The notes below the pieces were generated by a model, which saw only the letters and a list, made by a program, of their open reading frames with translations, made no database searches and was not told where the DNA came from. A stretch of 57,306 bases of DNA, the filler included, from Trichosphaerium sp. ATCC 40318 (Eukaryota; Protista; Tubulinea): assembly GCA_038496445.1 (NCBI GenBank). It is 3 parts of 3 records of this genome, joined end to end, with 100 filler letters (N's around TTAATTAATTAA, not from the genome) between each part and the next. Parts side by side here need not be neighbours in the genome. Positions count along the whole stretch, not along the records: positions 42,037 to 57,306 come from JALMLS010000119.1; 2 more parts are not named here. One strand, given 5' to 3'. Below are positions 45,876-51,329 of the stretch, piece after piece. The translations under genes and the position numbers were made by a program. The first letter of the stretch is position 1. Every line of letters starts with the position of its first letter.

Positions 45876-48800
45876 TTACTTTGCTGTACTTTCAAGGAGA
45901 GCTATTTTTGCCAGTAGAATGGCATTCTTCTCCTTTAGGCTAGTGATGTCTCGCATTAGATCTTGGACACTTTCGGTGAGGTTGATATTGTCTAGCTTTA
46001 GGGTGTTATTGCTTCCTGTGAGGTTGATATTGTCTAGCTTTAGGGTGTTATTGCTTCTTGTGAGGTCTTTGATGCTTTTGGTCAATTCAGTAATGTGCTG
46101 TTCTTTGTTTGCATTCATTTTCTGTGAATTCCAATGAAGTTCAGCCAGGCTCTTCTTCAATTTCTCTACCTCGTTGTTTGATTCTAGTTCAAGATTGGCA
46201 TAATTATAACTTGGTTGTTCATCATCAGTTGAATCATCATGGGCAGCCCACAGTTTTCTAGTACAAAACTTAAGTTTAAAAGATACTATAAAATTATACC
46301 GGTTAGAAATAAAAGTGGCGTCAGAATCAGATAGTTCATCATCAGATAGCTCGCCAGCTGAACCAGCAGTATCTACTTCTGAAGCTTGATCTTCAGTTTG
46401 TTCATTATCGCCTTTCTCTTTCTTTGTCTTTTTATCAACTTTCTTGGCTTTTGAACGTTTTTTTGTACGTTTTTTACGTTCAACTTTGATGATGTACCGA
46501 GCAACAGCTTGAGTATCTAAAATAGTGTTTAATACTTTAATCACATTTTTCGATTGTATTGCTGAGTGTACCTTGTGCCACTACCAGCTCATCGTATACT
46601 GCATCTTCAAGTTTATCTGCGGGCAAAAGTTTACCGATGCGGTCTACCAATGCATAGTGGCTTTGGTAGCCTGGTTTTATTGGCCTTCCGTGCAAGCTTT
46701 CATTCGTGGTTTTGGTACCCTCATCAGTCTTTTTACATACAAGGGGATCATGCTTTTTATCAAGTAAGTAAAGAATATCCACATGTTTGCTTACCGGATA
46801 AACGTTCCCAGGAGTAACAAGACTTAAAACCAGTGTTTTTGAAGTTGTTCCTTTTAAATCATATGAAGCGGCATACTTTATGCTTCTCTATTGCCGAAAA
46901 TGAATATTGACCACCTGCAATAATTGGGTAATAACGTACAGTGAAGTATATCCCTTGACCATAGTAACCAGCGTCTAAAGAACTCACAGTTCCAAAACCA
47001 GCCTTTACAATACTCTTAGCAGCTTCTTCGGTTGTTCCATGGACCATCAATATCACTGGTAACTAAATAAAATGTTTGTAGTGCAAGAGTACCAAGAACA
47101 TTACCTTATCTTTTTTTTCAGTATAACAATCATTAAAAGCAGTGAGGGCGTTGTACTTTTGGTACACAGTCTCTTTGTATTTCTTGTAGATACTATCAGT
47201 TTTCCACTTTTGTTTTTTAAACAACTTGGGCAGTTCTCTAATAGATGCATGTTTAGAATCACGAAAATGCCTATGAAGTGTGGAGCAACCGTACTGATGT
47301 CTGTGCGTCAGTATTTCGTTGATTCGACCAAAGTTTTCTGTCAAGATGTCATTATAAACGAGAGTCGCTTCAATGATTTCGTAATTGTCACAGCCATGTA
47401 GTTTTGACATCTCCTGTTTGAGGATGTTGAATTCTCTGACTGCCACTTTGTCGTTTGTATCAAGAAGGTTCAGTGTTTTGTAGTGTGTTGCCTTTGCAAC
47501 AATGCCTCTTTTTGTAATATTAGAACTAATAAAAAGTAATTGTACGCACGTGTTAGAGCTATCCCAATTATTTGCAAAATACAATCGCGGATTCAGGCTC
47601 CATGCGTTTTCACCTTTTAATCCTTTTGACAACTTTTTTTAGTACTATATCACCACACGCTTCTTACCTTCAGTACACTCTTCTTTTAAGGATTCATCTT
47701 GACTGTTATTAACCCAAGCATCATTGGGCATATCATGCAGAATGCCTTGCATTGATTGCCCATCTTGTTTCCAGAATTTCTGTAGAAAAAGAATGTTGTT
47801 TGTAGTGTAGATGTTAGCAGTGAAGATATCGTACCGGAGACAGTACAACTTTGGGATCGCATGTAGAACAAATTAAATAACAAATCCCTTTTTCCATTGC
47901 CAGTTTGAAATAATACCGCGTTGGCTAAACGTTATAATGGTTAGATATTGGTATTCAACAAAGTGTACCAAACGGTGAAGCCATTCTTCAAACTGTTTTC
48001 TCCCCTCTACGTAGTGCTTTTTACAGTATCTCCACAGTGGATGGCATTGTTTACCACTTGGACAGTATTTTAAGAAAGTTACGAATTTTTCAACAGCTGA
48101 GGGTGTATTTGATACCACTTCTCTAATTAAAATGAACATAAAGTCTTGCCACTTTCTTTGGCATGGAGTTACTACTACTTACAGTGTTAGCTATATTTCA
48201 CCAAATTTTTTGTAATGTGCCCAATACCTGAATTCTTGTTGGTTTCACTTTCATCAATAGTATCAATAGTACTTGCGTTAGGTTTGATTAATTTCAACAT
48301 TAATATTGATATATAGTCAAAATCTCAAATGATAGTAAATAAACATAGTTTTTATCTCATTTGCGATATTACCTGCATAAATCAAAGCTGTATTTCCATA
48401 TTTATCAACAACTTCAATATTGGCGTTGGCTTTGAGTAAGATTGATACAACTTCATTGCGTCCTTTTATTGCTAAATAGTATAGTGAGATATGTACATGT
48501 TGTATCTCATCATATCATGTTACCTGCATACATTAAAGCTGTCCTTCCATCTTTATCAACAGCATCAATATTGGCGTTGGCTTTGAGTAAGATTGATACA
48601 ACTTCACCCTGTCCATCATATGCTAAATAGTAGAATGAGATATGTACATGTTGTATCTCATCATATCATGTTACCTGCACATATTAAAGCTGTCATTCCA
48701 TCTTTACCAACAGCATCAATATTGGCGTTGGCTTTGAGTAAGATTGATACAACTTCACCGTGTCCTTTTATTGCTAAATAGTAGAATGAGATATGTACAT

Positions 48801-51329
48801 GTTGTATCTCATCATATCATGTTACCTGCACACATTAAAGCTGTATTTCCAAATTTACCAACAGCATCAACATTGGCGTTGGCTTTGAGTAAGATTGATA
48901 CAACTTCATTGTGTCCATATTGTGCTAAATAGTAGAATGAGATATGTACATGTTGTATCTCATCATATCATGTTACCTGCACATATTAAAGCTGTCATTC
49001 CATCTTTATCAACAGCATCAATATTGGTGTTGGCTTTGAGTAAGATTGATACAACTTCATTGTGTCCTTTTATTACTAAATAGTAGAGTGAGATATGTAC
49101 ATGTTGTATCTCATCATATCATGTTACCTGCACACATTAAAGCTGTCATTCCATATTTACCAACAGCATCAATATTGGCGTTGGCTTTGAGTAAGATTGA
49201 TACAACTTCATTGTGTCCATCATATGCTAAATAGTAGAGTGAGATATGTACATGTTGTATCTCATCATATCATGTTACCTGCTTTAATTAAAGCTGTATT
49301 TCCATTTCTAGCAACAGCATCAACATTGGCGTTGGCTTTGAGTAAGATTGATACAACTTCACCGTGTCCATCATATGCTAAATAGTAGAATGAGATATGT
49401 ACATGTTGTATCTCATCATATCATGTTACCTGCACACATTAAAGCTGTCTTTCCATATTTATCAACAACATCAACATTGGCGTTGGCTTTGAGTAAGATT
49501 GATACAACTTCATTGCGTCCTTGTATTGCTAAATAGTAGAATGAGATATGTACATGTTGTATCTCATCATATCATGTTACCTGCTTTAATTAAAGCTGTA
49601 TTTCCATCTTTATCAACAGCATCAATATTGGCGTTGGCTTTGAGTAAGATTGATACAACTTTATTGTGTCCATTATATGCTAAATAGTAGAATGAGATAT
49701 GTACATGTTGTATCTCATCATATCATGTTACCTGCATACATTAAAGCTGTATTTCCATCTTCATCAACAGTATCAATATTGGTGTAGGCTTTGAGTAAGA
49801 TTGATACAACTTCATTGTGTCCTTTTTGTGCTAAATAGTAGAGTGAGATATGTACATGTTGTATCTCATCATATCATGTTACCTGCATACATTAAAGCTG
49901 TATTTCCATCTTCATCAACAGTATCAATATTGGTGTAGGCTTTGAGTAAGATTGATACAACTTCATTGTGTCCATATTGTGCTAAATAGTAGAGTGAGAT
50001 ATGTACATGTTGTATCTCATCATATCATGTTACCTGCACATATTAAAGCTGTCTTTCCATATTCATCAACAACATCAACATTGGCGTTGGCTTTGAGTAA
50101 GATTGATACAACTTCATTGTGTCCATTATATGCTAAATAGTAGAGTGAGATATGTATATGTTGTATTTCATCATATTATGTTACCTGCACATATTAAAGC
50201 TGTCCTTCCATTTCTAGCAACAGCATCAACATTGGCGTTGGCTTTGAGTAAGATTGATACAACTTCACCGTGTCCTTTTATTGCTAAATAATAGAATGAG
50301 ATATGTACATGTTGTATCTCATCATATCATGTTACCTGCACATATTAAAGCTGTATTTCCAAATTTACCAACAGCATCAACATTGGCGTTGGCTTTGAGT
50401 AAGATTGATACAACTTCATTGTGTCCATCATATGCTAAATAGTAGAATGAGATATGTACATGTTGTATCTCATCATATCATGTTACCTGCTTTAATTAAA
50501 GCTGTATTTCCATTTCTAGCAACAGCATCAACATTGGCGTTGGCTTTGAGTAAGATTGATACAACTTCACCGTGTCCATCATATGCTAAATAGTAGAATG
50601 AGATATGTACATGTTGTATCTCATCATATCATGTTACCTGCACATATTAAAGCTGTATTTCCATATTTATCAACAACATCAACATTGGCGTTGGCTTTGA
50701 GTAAGATTGATACAACTTCATTGCGTCCATATTGTGCTAAATAGTAGAGTGAGATATGTACATGTTGTATCTCATCATATCATGTTACCTGCTTTAATTA
50801 AAGCTGTATTTCCATTTCTAGCAACAGCATCAACATTGGCGTTGGCTTTGAGTAAGATTGATACAACTTCACCGTGTCCTTTTATTGCTAAATAGTAGAG
50901 TGAGATATGTACATGTTGTATCTCATCATATCATGTTACCTGCACATATTAAAGCTGTATTTCCATATTTATCAACAACATCAACATTGGCGTTGGCTTT
51001 GAGTAAGATTGATACAACTTCATTGTGTCCTTTTATTACTAAATAGTAGAATGAGATATGTACATGTTGTATCTCATCATATCATGTTACCTGCACACAT
51101 TAAAGCTGTATTTCCATATTTATCAACAGCATCAACATTGGCGTTGGCTTTGAGTAATGTTGATACAACTGCATTGTAGCCATTTGTTGCTAAACTTTGT
51201 CAACTATTTGTTTAGCAAGCATTACAAACCTGCAAAAGAAAACACAATTTCAATTATGGGGAGATAGATGTTGTTGGTTGGTTCTTCCTTTTCTAAACAT
51301 TGGTATTTGTCGCTCTGTGATTCTGTCAT
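45876..51329 (-). CDS. Ankyrin-repeat array (19 one-repeat exons) + PARP-like ADP-ribosyltransferase + K-rich/acidic segment + coiled coil
   Basis: Exon 1 (51329-51230) reads MTESQSDKYQ...IYLPIIEIVFSFA, followed by 19 in-frame 99-nt exons and then linker exons. The ART motifs are MVHGTT, GYYGQGIYFT|RSIKYAASY, LSLVTPGNVYP, PGYQSHY, VYDELVVAQ and TQAVARYII. Stop TAA at 45876-45878. Some linker splice sites were inferred by eye. Confidence 0.85.
48373..51189 (-). repeat. 151-bp exon-intron tandem array: 19 x 99-nt ankyrin exon + 18 x 52-nt intron
   Basis: Exons occupy 48373+151n to 48471+151n (n=0-18). Each encodes AxxGxxEVVSILLKANANxDxVxxxGxTALxxA. The intron is GTAACATG...CTATTTAG and all introns are phase 1. 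Confidence 0.95.

Follow-up and report, generated by a model that had tools for sequence, protein, structure and literature searches.

An array of 19 near-identical ankyrin exons, variable mainly at predicted binding positions, precedes a predicted PARP-like domain in Trichosphaerium sp.

The window analysed (a stretch of 57,306 nt, filler included, joined from three records of Trichosphaerium sp. ATCC 40318) contains a minus-strand gene in which 19 near-identical ankyrin repeats, each encoded by its own exon, lie in front of a predicted PARP-like ADP-ribosyltransferase domain. Since the units differ almost only at the predicted binding surface, and stand before such a domain, the array looks like a fast-evolving recognition module. 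The probable explanation is that concerted evolution and diversifying selection act together on a target-recognition solenoid that would aim the predicted ADP-ribosyltransferase, as parts of one expressed protein of 1300 residues.

The array (48373..51189, minus strand) consists of 19 exons of 99 bp, all phase 1-1, and 18 introns of 52 nt; array exon i runs from 51189-151(i-1) to 51091-151(i-1). TRF found a single array at 48369..51194 (period 151, 18.7 copies, 91% matches, 0% indels, score 4455). All 19 exons are exactly 99 bp long, each encodes one 33-residue ankyrin repeat (pattern xxGHxEVVSILLKANANVDxVxxxGxTALxxAA), and the shared reading frame is open across the 2.8 kb with no stops and no indels. 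TRF and the exon translations thus agree with the first-pass annotation, which had described 19 ankyrin exons free of stops and indels; the number and order of the units are those of the assembled record, tandem 151-bp arrays being hard to assemble. A Pfam scan of a single array exon placed it among ankyrin repeats (Ank_4, 6.4e-6; Ank, 1.9e-5). Each of array exons 1-18 is followed by a near-identical GT..AG intron (representative copy: 50888..50939, minus strand, 52 nt, GTAACA...ATTTAG); the 18 copies show six variable columns in all, of which one is non-singleton. The small hairpin in this intron was no more stable than shuffled sequence (z = 0.13). Intron 19, unlike the array introns, is unique and 49 nt long (48372..48324).

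The whole gene model (45876..51329, minus strand) has 32 exons, 1300 codons plus TAA, and 31 introns, all GT-AG and 40-57 nt long. Once spliced it contains no in-frame stops, and its homology with two transcript-derived proteins, P0001 and P0002, reaches the stop codon. The domain order is an N-terminal cap, the 19 ankyrin exons, a C-terminal capping ankyrin exon, a linker, the PARP-like domain and a coiled coil, giving 21 ankyrin repeats (N-cap, 19 near-identical units and C-cap). Exon 0 (51230..51329, minus strand, start codon at 51329) encodes 33 residues that end in a partial capping repeat (..IYLPIIEIVFSFA); the intron after it (51229..51190) is 40 nt long, and an in-frame stop lies four codons upstream of the ATG. 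Exon 20 (48228..48323, minus strand, 96 bp, phase 1-1) encodes a degenerate C-terminal capping repeat, the translation of which (DFDYISILMLKLIKPNASTIDTIDESETNKNS) stays in frame and still fits the repeat pattern. All 20 ankyrin exons (19 of 99 bp and one of 96 bp) are therefore phase 1-1, and their donors and acceptors are identical. The linker (exons 21-25; 47295..48177, minus strand), three introns of which were corrected from public run contigs (47834..47780, 47667..47623 and 47549..47508), has three conserved cysteines and matches no Pfam family. With two homologues among 1.84 billion representative proteins, it is, as judged by sequence searches, lineage-specific.

The PARP-like catalytic domain (exons 26-29; 46572..47237, minus strand) carries a predicted H-Y-E triad in the motifs VHGT, GIYF and YDELVV. 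The domain is spread over four exons and the Pfam scan took exons one at a time, and in that scan one exon matched PF00644 partially (20.7 bits, E = 3e-4; gathering cut-off 26.7). The same family scored above this cut-off in both relatives (36.5 bits for P0001, 30.9 for P0002), and the core exons of the domain share 74-93% identity with P0002. A profile search of the PDB returned PARP12 (2e-4) and PARP4 (1.6e-3), in which the three triad residues aligned: the H of VHGT and the Y of GIYF match PARP12, while the E of YDELVV matches that of DDEFVV in PARP4. The C-terminal domain is accordingly classed as a predicted PARP-like ADP-ribosyltransferase. Exons 30-31 (45876..46516, minus strand) encode a basic/acidic low-complexity stretch and a coiled-coil-like tail ending in ..LLESTAK before the TAA. 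This tail aligns with those of P0001 and P0002 and gave weak leucine-zipper and golgin-type Pfam matches, from which we infer a C-terminal coiled coil. Pfam scans that covered the linker exons and positions 1-200 of P0002 found no SAM domain, even at E up to 10; no NOD or ROC-COR was found either, the PARP-like domain being the only recognised non-repeat domain, and no Pfam domains were present in open frames of the minus strand as far as 3 kb upstream of the gene. The array is attached to this predicted PARP-like domain and coiled coil and not to an NLR or ROCO core, a context absent from the first-pass reading. The same C-terminal module lies behind ankyrin repeats in L001, a transcript of a relative, where the repeats share about 55% mean DNA identity, show scaffold changes and one indel, and are not homogenised. 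A single-sequence structure model of the relative's repeats gave an implausible all-beta fold.

The gene is transcribed and spliced, because nine of the predicted introns are missing from public run contigs (assembled from short-read runs). Contigs of runs X1, X7 and X3 lacked introns of 55, 52, 42, 57, 45, 42 and 55 nt at exactly the predicted sites, and in X1 and X7 contigs exon 0 was joined straight to exon 1 (loose ends 48458 and 48603). Junctions between ankyrin exons were also present, so the array itself is transcribed, a point on which the first-pass reading depended. An identical DNA contig from a marine metagenome was unspliced. Contigs from organism A contained three variants of unit positions 1 and 2 (QN, QG and RE) that none of the 19 units of the window has, a hint of further diversity in contigs in which alleles and paralogues look alike.

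Mean identity between units is 88.6% at the nucleotide and 76% at the amino acid level, and 16 of the 17 internal units (2-18) are distinct. For these internal units, pN was 0.144 and pS 0.016 (ratio 8.9). Nucleotide diversity was 0.119 in exons versus 0.021 in introns, which are thus about six times less diverse, and the non-singleton variable columns numbered 24 in exons versus one in introns. The minimal number of state changes was 29 at the amino acid level versus one synonymous (binomial P = 0.004). Under a GY94 codon model, the maximum-likelihood omega lay at the upper bound and omega = 1 was rejected (2dlnL = 25.7); these selection tests compare paralogous units of one gene copy, and recombination breaks the tree that the codon model assumes. 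Eleven codons are hypervariable (unit numbering 1, 2, 4, 5, 20, 22, 23, 24, 26, 30 and 31) and hold 1315 of the 1489 summed nonsynonymous differences among units 2-18 (88%). Outside them there is not one synonymous difference (pS = 0), the scaffold codons of units 2-18 being identical in DNA; the internal units show a single synonymous polymorphism, ATA/ATT at codon 30. In many of the differences, codons are swapped at more than one nucleotide (e.g. ATA/CAA/TAT, TGT/AAA/TAT and AAT/GGT). The variable sites are mosaic, with all four gametes present in 32 of 91 informative site pairs, and the 5′ and 3′ variable clusters were not significantly linked, whether they lay in the same exon or on either side of an intron. 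The closest units are 5 and 13 (one difference) and 9 and 10 (three differences), pairs that indicate recent turnover of units.

These counts bear out most of what had been read from the array at first sight: a scaffold invariant at the DNA level, variation gathered at a limited set of positions, and change that is almost wholly nonsynonymous, with ATA/ATT as the one exception. Concerted evolution, also proposed then, agrees with the near-identity of introns and silent sites across units and with the mosaic of variable sites, and the pN/pS ratio, the excess of amino acid changes and the rejection of omega = 1 argue for the diversifying selection invoked alongside it.

The variable positions had further been said to include those randomised in designed ankyrin repeat proteins (DARPins), which we take to be six (2, 3, 5, 13, 14 and 33). 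The register was checked against solved DARPins, with which one array exon aligned repeat by repeat (multi-repeat chain 6mol_A, E = 1.7e-43), the D-K-Y-G-N of the array being matched to D-x-x-G-x. Unit positions 23, 24 and 26 correspond to x2, x3 and x5, and unit positions 1 and 2 to x13 and x14; all five rank among the positions of highest entropy. The most variable codons thus align with five of these six positions, four of them among the five most variable. The correspondence fails at position 33 (unit 21), which is invariant in the array, and two to four variable codons lie outside the canonical paratope (unit positions 4 and 5, plus a conservative I/M at 30).

In the explanation that we favour, the 21 ankyrin repeats would form a long solenoid in which groove-facing beta-turn and inner-helix residues vary from repeat to repeat on a constant scaffold. 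The 151-bp unit (99-bp exon plus 52-nt intron) would act as a coding minisatellite: the pattern suggests that unequal crossing-over and gene conversion homogenise introns, silent sites and scaffold codons and reshuffle the variable codons, while selection, to go by its statistical signature, would favour and keep amino acid diversity at about 11 codons per unit. The intron is predicted to have the inner-helix/beta-turn cluster of the preceding exon on one side and, on the other, the residues equivalent to x13 and x14 in the following exon. Because it separates these two paratope clusters, crossovers within it would recombine the halves of one structural repeat's binding surface. The solenoid may then bind one or more variable targets and present them to the H-Y-E domain for ADP-ribosylation, recruitment through ankyrin repeats being the logic of tankyrase, and the C-terminal coiled coil probably mediates oligomerisation. 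The most likely setting would be genetic conflict, whether with a virus or parasite or in non-self recognition, and an arms-race or immune role of the protein is plausible.

Other readings have to be weighed against this one. The variable surface residues could be old, held by purifying selection for constant endogenous partners, as in ankyrins and tankyrase, with conversion homogenising the rest. Comparisons within one gene make diversifying selection and long-term retention against conversion look alike, multi-nucleotide codon differences are consistent with old divergence, and housekeeping ANK-PARP proteins such as tankyrase do exist (PMC9688111). However, gene conversion could give this pattern only by passing over 11 codons scattered at both ends of each 99-bp exon and yet erasing all silent differences in between. 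That the variable clusters are unlinked, that the near-duplicate pairs 5/13 and 9/10 point to ongoing turnover, that organism A has position-1/2 variants unseen in the window, and that the relative's repeats are not homogenised likewise make such fixed heterogeneity unlikely. Neutral differences in a very recent tandem amplification, or errors in the assembly of a shorter array, are extremely improbable. Assembly difficulty does apply to a 151-bp tandem array, the interior of which rests on this assembly, but random changes or errors would strike introns and silent sites equally, and the counts of 24 versus one columns and 29 versus one changes already contradict a neutral or error origin of the pattern; 2.8 kb free of indels and stops, and spliced ankyrin exons in run contigs, also speak against it.

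A different kind of alternative concerns the mature protein, which might include some of the 19 units and not the others if the array consisted of cassette exons that are skipped or chosen in a mutually exclusive manner. In its favour, the 20 ankyrin exons are all symmetric in phase and share the same donors and acceptors, and brown-algal LRR exon arrays undergo alternative splicing (PMC11378527). One run-contig junction joins an IKAA-type exon end to a CAATAAAAGG-type start, a pair that is not adjacent in the window; the match, however, covers 28 nt at ≥90%, and the exon 11/12 junction fits it with one mismatch. Isoform structure is invisible in contigs, short ankyrin stacks require caps and several repeats, and nothing points to mutual exclusivity; we consider this reading very unlikely. 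A related and distinctly improbable idea is that the array serves as a germline combinatorial library, in which exon skipping, whether regulated or stochastic, or else unequal recombination that is frequent in mitosis would give individual cells or clones different solenoids to aim the predicted ADP-ribosyltransferase. Such cell- or clone-specific solenoids could arise because every ankyrin exon has phase 1-1 and the same splice sites, and the introns barely differ. If true, a defence that generates repertoires would exist beyond animals, fungi and plants, with ANK-PARP as its base in place of NLR or LRR.

The favoured reading, concerted evolution with diversifying selection, has counterparts in known systems. 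Minisatellite-like coding arrays of near-identical units that differ mainly at ligand-contact residues and change by unequal recombination are found in PRDM9 zinc fingers and TAL-effector repeats; these have other folds, DNA ligands and units within a single exon, unlike the ankyrin array. The analogies first drawn, with fungal and brown-algal arrays, are apt as regards fungal ANK, WD and TPR repeats and the one-LRR-per-exon design (PMC4986451, PMC11378527). In fungal NLR (STAND) proteins such as Podospora Pa_3_8560 and HET-E/HNWD, ANK, TPR and WD repeats are kept near-identical by concerted evolution, with arrays of about 20 units among them (Dyrka et al. 2014, PMC4986451). Their selection signature, positive selection at concave-face codons, appears to be shared by the present array. 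Fungal NLRs, however, have a NACHT or NB-ARC partner where a PARP-like one is predicted here; no NOD lies N-terminal to the repeats, the first of which is preceded by 33 residues and, further upstream, an in-frame stop. Fungal arrays are also uninterrupted, whereas each repeat here has its own exon and a homogenised intron, and amino acid identity between units is 76% (88.6% for nucleotides) against a cut-off of >85% for fungal repeats (PMC4986451). The ROCO-LRR and NB-ARC-TPR exon arrays of brown algae, marine candidate immune receptors (Teng et al. 2024, PMC11378527, citing Zambounis et al. 2012), resemble the array in that each repeat occupies its own phase-compatible exon (here 19 + 1, phase 1-1), exons are shuffled and residues of the concave face are under diversifying selection (pN/pS 8.9 here). 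They differ in their unit (LRR exons of 72 bp versus ankyrin exons of 99 bp) and in their ROC-COR GTPase (ROCO) or NB-ARC core, not found here; the tiny (52 nt), near-identical introns of the present array are unlike theirs.

Tankyrase combines ankyrin repeat clusters, a SAM domain and a PARP domain (PMC9688111). The predicted protein resembles it in its long N-terminal ankyrin domain, followed by an H-Y-E PARP domain and a C-terminal or adjacent oligomerisation element, so the ankyrin domain probably recruits substrates for ADP-ribosylation, by analogy. Tankyrase repeats, however, form five conserved ankyrin repeat clusters (ARCs) that recognise the tankyrase-binding motif RxxxxG, in contrast to one continuous hypervariable array with no detected SAM; the best PDB matches of the catalytic domain are PARP12 and PARP4, not tankyrase; and tankyrases show high conservation, in contrast to this family with its two detectable relatives. 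With DARPin libraries (PMC8683736) the array shares a fixed 33-residue consensus scaffold with diversity on the beta-turn and first-helix surface. DARPins are designed and have two to three internal repeats, whereas this array is natural, genomic and has 19; their TPLH motif is TAL[I/M] in the array, where DARPin-equivalent positions 1, 9, 10, 16, 17 and 32 additionally vary and 33 is constant.

Near-identical arrays with hypervariable binding residues are characteristic of recognition proteins that adapt rapidly, such as fungal NLRs, brown-algal ROCO-LRRs, PRDM9 and TAL effectors. The use of such arrays for recognition is a known design; what is new in this marine eukaryote is an ankyrin scaffold on which the naturally variable positions are for the most part those chosen for DARPins, the encoding of every repeat by its own exon, with 52-nt introns that are homogenised too and divide the binding surface of each structural repeat, and a predicted PARP-like ADP-ribosyltransferase effector in place of a NOD or ROC-COR core. 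PARPs have been implicated in vertebrate host-virus conflict (PMC4038475). If the conflict reading is true, the gene would connect ADP-ribosylation with immunity through variable receptors in protists, and the array would be a natural test case for the diversification of ankyrin paratopes.

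A single tandem array was identified in the window by Tandem Repeats Finder (48369..51194; period 151, 18.7 copies, 91% matches, 0 indels, score 4455). On the minus strand, its unit consists of a 99-bp exon followed by a 52-nt segment that starts with GTAACA and ends with ATTTAG. Array exon i (i = 1 to 19) extends, on the minus strand, from position 51189-151(i-1) down to 51091-151(i-1), and is 99 bp long in every case. Eighteen 52-nt introns lie between the array exons, while a distinct 49-nt intron follows exon 19. All 19 exons were open in a single frame, with phase 1 at both ends, their product being a 33-residue unit of the form xxGHxEVVSILLKANANVDxVxxxGxTALxxAA. 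A single array exon matched the Pfam ankyrin models (Ank_4, 6.4e-6; Ank, 1.9e-5) and aligned repeat-by-repeat with solved DARPins (6mol_A, E = 1.7e-43). The first-pass annotation had described 19 exons with an invariant scaffold and a list of variable positions, which exon extraction and translation bore out in every particular; its further statements that no exon contained a stop or an indel, that ATA/ATT was the sole silent change among the internal units (units 2-18), and that many changes were multi-nucleotide codon swaps were also found to be correct. The number and order of the units are taken solely from the assembly. An 8-bp inverted repeat in the array intron was considered as a structural element and rejected, its stability being that of shuffled sequence (z = 0.13). 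The sole common intron polymorphism was at nt 40 (T in 10 copies, C in 8), and judged by eye, its two states did not obviously track the hypervariable codons of the adjacent exons.

A search of 1.84 billion representative proteins with HMMER, using a 191-aa frame from the linker downstream of the array, detected two homologues only, P0001 and P0002, both on transcript-like contigs from one JGI sample. Guided by these two transcript-derived homologues, the gene containing the array (hereafter the ANK-PARP gene) was modelled at 51329..45876 on the minus strand, as 32 exons that together comprise 1300 codons followed by a TAA stop and are separated by 31 GT-AG introns (40-57 nt); it uses the standard genetic code, and the organism's G+C content is ~35%. 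The ATG lies in exon 0 (minus strand), four codons downstream of an in-frame stop; this exon encodes a partial N-cap, and exon 20 (48323..48228, minus strand) a degenerate C-cap repeat. The introns have GTA-rich donors and weak polypyrimidine tracts, and their narrow length range suggests that tiny introns are the rule throughout this genome. Several of them contain no stop and keep the reading frame (e.g. 47294..47238 and 47549..47508), so that they are absorbed into exons when ORFs are read naively. At intron 20, the acceptor (48178-48186, minus strand) reads TAG TAG TAG, offering three in-frame alternative 3′ splice sites that would add or remove one or two valines.

The ankyrin domain is followed by a linker of ~230 residues with no Pfam match and by a PARP-like catalytic domain (47237..46572, minus strand); a charged segment and then a coiled-coil-like tail complete the protein. 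The catalytic domain was assigned as PARP-like because PF00644 scored above the gathering threshold in both P0001 and P0002 and gave a sub-threshold partial match to one exon in the window, and because a PDB profile search with the region matched PARP12 (2e-4) and PARP4 (1.6e-3), aligning a predicted H-Y-E catalytic triad (His of VHGT, Tyr of GIYF, Glu of YDELVV). At the level of sequence, these results identify the C-terminal domain as PARP-like with an H-Y-E triad. A phmmer search of the PDB with a relative's PARP region alone gave no match, a small profile being needed, and the predicted model of a relative's linker and PARP region had a pLDDT of only 35. The linker contains three cysteines spaced C-x5-C-x6-C (CPSGKxC..LW..C; 47969-48177, minus strand) that are kept in residues 31-45 of P0002; their only match was a faint one to a CCCH finger (E = 0.07), and P0002 does not share the histidine found after them in the window. 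In the tail, a 42-bp tandem duplication (45976-46066, minus-strand exon 31; 2.2 copies, 97% identity) repeats the peptide SNNTLKLDNINLT. No NACHT, NB-ARC, ROC-COR or SAM domain was found in the gene or in ~3 kb upstream on the same strand. Pfam searches of the flanking open frames returned only MORN repeats, in two adjacent frames at 55326-55738 on the plus strand (1.5e-9 and 1.9e-7), and a sub-threshold SAP match at 53122-53466 on the plus strand (19.9 bits; cut-off 23.9). The MORN frames are probably part of another gene, which lies upstream of the ANK-PARP gene and is encoded on the opposite strand. Scanning the piece with Rfam and for tRNAs revealed no RNA families and no tRNAs.

Contigs assembled from public sequencing runs (X1 and X7 from organism A, X3 from organism B) skipped 55, 52, 42, 57, 45, 42 and 55 nt at predicted or near-predicted introns, and were used to correct three splice sites. 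One X1 contig matched 181 nt of exon 29 in the window without a difference, and it was spliced on both sides of this stretch. Within the array, contigs skipped intron 18, one loose end joined an ankyrin exon directly onto another, and two loose ends joined exon 1 to exon 0. The intron-less joins show the RNA origin of these runs, their RNA label itself being a guess, and indicate that the array is transcribed, a property on which the first-pass annotation had made its reading depend. In a marine metagenome (run X2), a contig was identical to the window and unspliced across the intron 47104..47063, so that this part of the gene is supported independently by DNA; the organism occurs in marine metagenomes. 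Together, these data establish that the gene, with 21 ankyrin repeats in the model, is real and spliced. Some differences among the contigs were also observed. Two acceptors are candidates for the intron after exon 28 (46729-46794, minus strand), which would be 42 nt or 66 nt long depending on the one chosen; an X1 contig used the 42-nt form. X3 and X7 contigs had 50 unrelated letters at this position, so this PARP-domain loop varies between relatives. X3 contigs skipped or replaced part of the duplicated region of the tail (joint 45984 to 46118).

The array exons were far more variable than the introns that separate them. Nucleotide diversity was 0.119 in exons versus 0.021 in introns, and 34 of 99 exon columns were variable versus 6 of 52 intron columns, five of these six being singletons. 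Among units 2-18, Nei-Gojobori counting gave pN = 0.144 and pS = 0.016 (ratio 8.9). Eleven hypervariable codons (unit positions 1, 2, 4, 5, 20, 22, 23, 24, 26, 30 and 31) carried 1315 of the 1489 summed nonsynonymous differences, with pN reaching 0.35, and outside them pS was exactly 0. Many variable codons differed at two or three nucleotides (e.g. ATA/CAA/TAT, TGT/AAA/TAT and AAT/GGT). Selection was assessed by a one-ratio GY94 likelihood test and by count-based tests. The codon model, fitted to the 16 unique internal units, placed omega at its upper bound (~50) and rejected omega = 1 (2dlnL = 25.7), although the units compared are paralogous and lie within one gene copy, and recombination violates the model's single-tree assumption. 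Counting distinct states gave 29 replacement changes versus one silent change (binomial P = 0.004). Per site of the respective class, replacement changes were approximately fourfold more frequent than silent ones (silent sites being synonymous plus intron sites; Fisher P = 4e-5), a contrast with both silent classes that is independent of any tree. There is therefore an extreme excess of replacements, while introns and silent sites have been homogenised across units; dN/dS on the array units lies far above 1, as the proposal of diversifying selection in the first-pass annotation had implied.

The DARPin alignments set the register, with D22-K23-Y24-G25-N26-T27 of the unit corresponding to DARPin D1-x2-x3-G4-x5-T6. 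Because the GH of helix 2 comes after unit positions 1 and 2, these are the equivalents of x13 and x14. In DARPin libraries, positions 2, 3, 5, 13, 14 and 33 are randomised. The highest entropies, in bits, were found at unit positions 2 (x14; 2.09), 24 (x3; 1.90), 26 (x5; 1.62), 1 (x13; 1.55), 22 (D1; 1.47), 23 (x2; 1.38) and 31 (DARPin position 10, one helical turn before 13/14; 1.38). Position 21, the equivalent of x33, was invariant, while positions 4 and 5, at the start of helix 2, and position 30 (a conservative I/M) varied yet are not part of the canonical paratope. The replacement excess is thus confined mainly to predicted groove-facing positions. By this register, the variation would lie largely, though not wholly, on the concave binding surface where the first-pass annotation had placed the variable sites. 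The DARPin paratope is made up of defined surface positions of the internal repeats, which are randomised (PMC8683736), and in fungal ANK arrays the variable residues occupy the same locations (Dyrka et al., PMC4986451). A single-sequence AlphaFold model of a relative's ankyrin segment was all-beta (pLDDT 78); as the segment has Ank Pfam hits of 1e-38, the model was dismissed as artefactual.

The internal units were mosaic. Sixteen of the 17 were distinct, and all four combinations were present at 32 of 91 informative site pairs. Linkage of the 5′ cluster of variable positions (1, 2, 4, 5) was not significant either with the 3′ cluster (20-31) of the same exon (P = 0.11) or with that of the preceding exon (P = 0.41), and the unit distance matrix by lag showed no periodicity or higher-order repeat structure. 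Near-duplicates were also present, units 5 and 13 differing by one base and units 9 and 10 by three. Mosaicism combined with near-duplicates marks ongoing concerted evolution through unequal exchange and conversion, and the 151-bp units may well be homogenised and shuffled by unequal crossing-over and conversion. The homogeneity of introns and silent sites, the mosaicism and the pN/pS ratio support the earlier interpretation of concerted evolution plus diversifying selection.

The replacement excess suggests that diversifying selection has favoured new binding specificities. The main rival explanation holds that the units differ at contacts with constant partners, contacts of long standing that are fixed by function. 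Organism A contigs contained QN, QG and RE at positions 1/2, combinations absent from all 19 units of the window; alleles, strains or paralogues could be their source. JGI metagenome contigs gave no match to the invariant 27-nt scaffold segment and hence no second array copy or allele. A mutational origin by DGR-like, adenine-targeted mutagenesis was rejected: A was the majority base in ~16 of the 34 variable columns (hand count), in an exon judged by eye to be A-rich, and no reverse transcriptase was found among the Pfam-scanned frames flanking the array.

The contig carrying P0002 (JGI 3300016894, Ga0186627_100633) has ankyrin repeats upstream of this protein. Their units share ~55% mean DNA identity, their scaffold residues differ, and one unit has 32 residues. 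A run of Ns lies between the ankyrin part and the C-terminal ORF, which are thus joined by scaffolding only, and gene calling yielded two separate proteins. These diverged repeats in the same architecture indicate that the ANK-PARP-coiled-coil arrangement is older, and that the homogenised hypervariable array is specific to the lineage of the window. This fits the rarity of concerted repeat evolution, which is lineage-specific (PMC5100051).

The ANK-PARP protein is neither an NLR nor a ROCO protein, nor is it a tankyrase; it resembles the first two in the evolution of its repeats, and tankyrase in its domain logic. The ankyrin solenoid may recruit targets for ADP-ribosylation, as in tankyrase (PMC9688111), and the coiled-coil tail would mediate oligomerisation. 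Antiviral PARPs evolve rapidly (PMC4038475). By analogy with these, with fungal NLR repeats (PMC4986451) and with brown-algal ROCO-LRR exon arrays (PMC11378527), an arms-race function is plausible, in which the ANK-PARP protein would take part in conflict with viruses or parasites.
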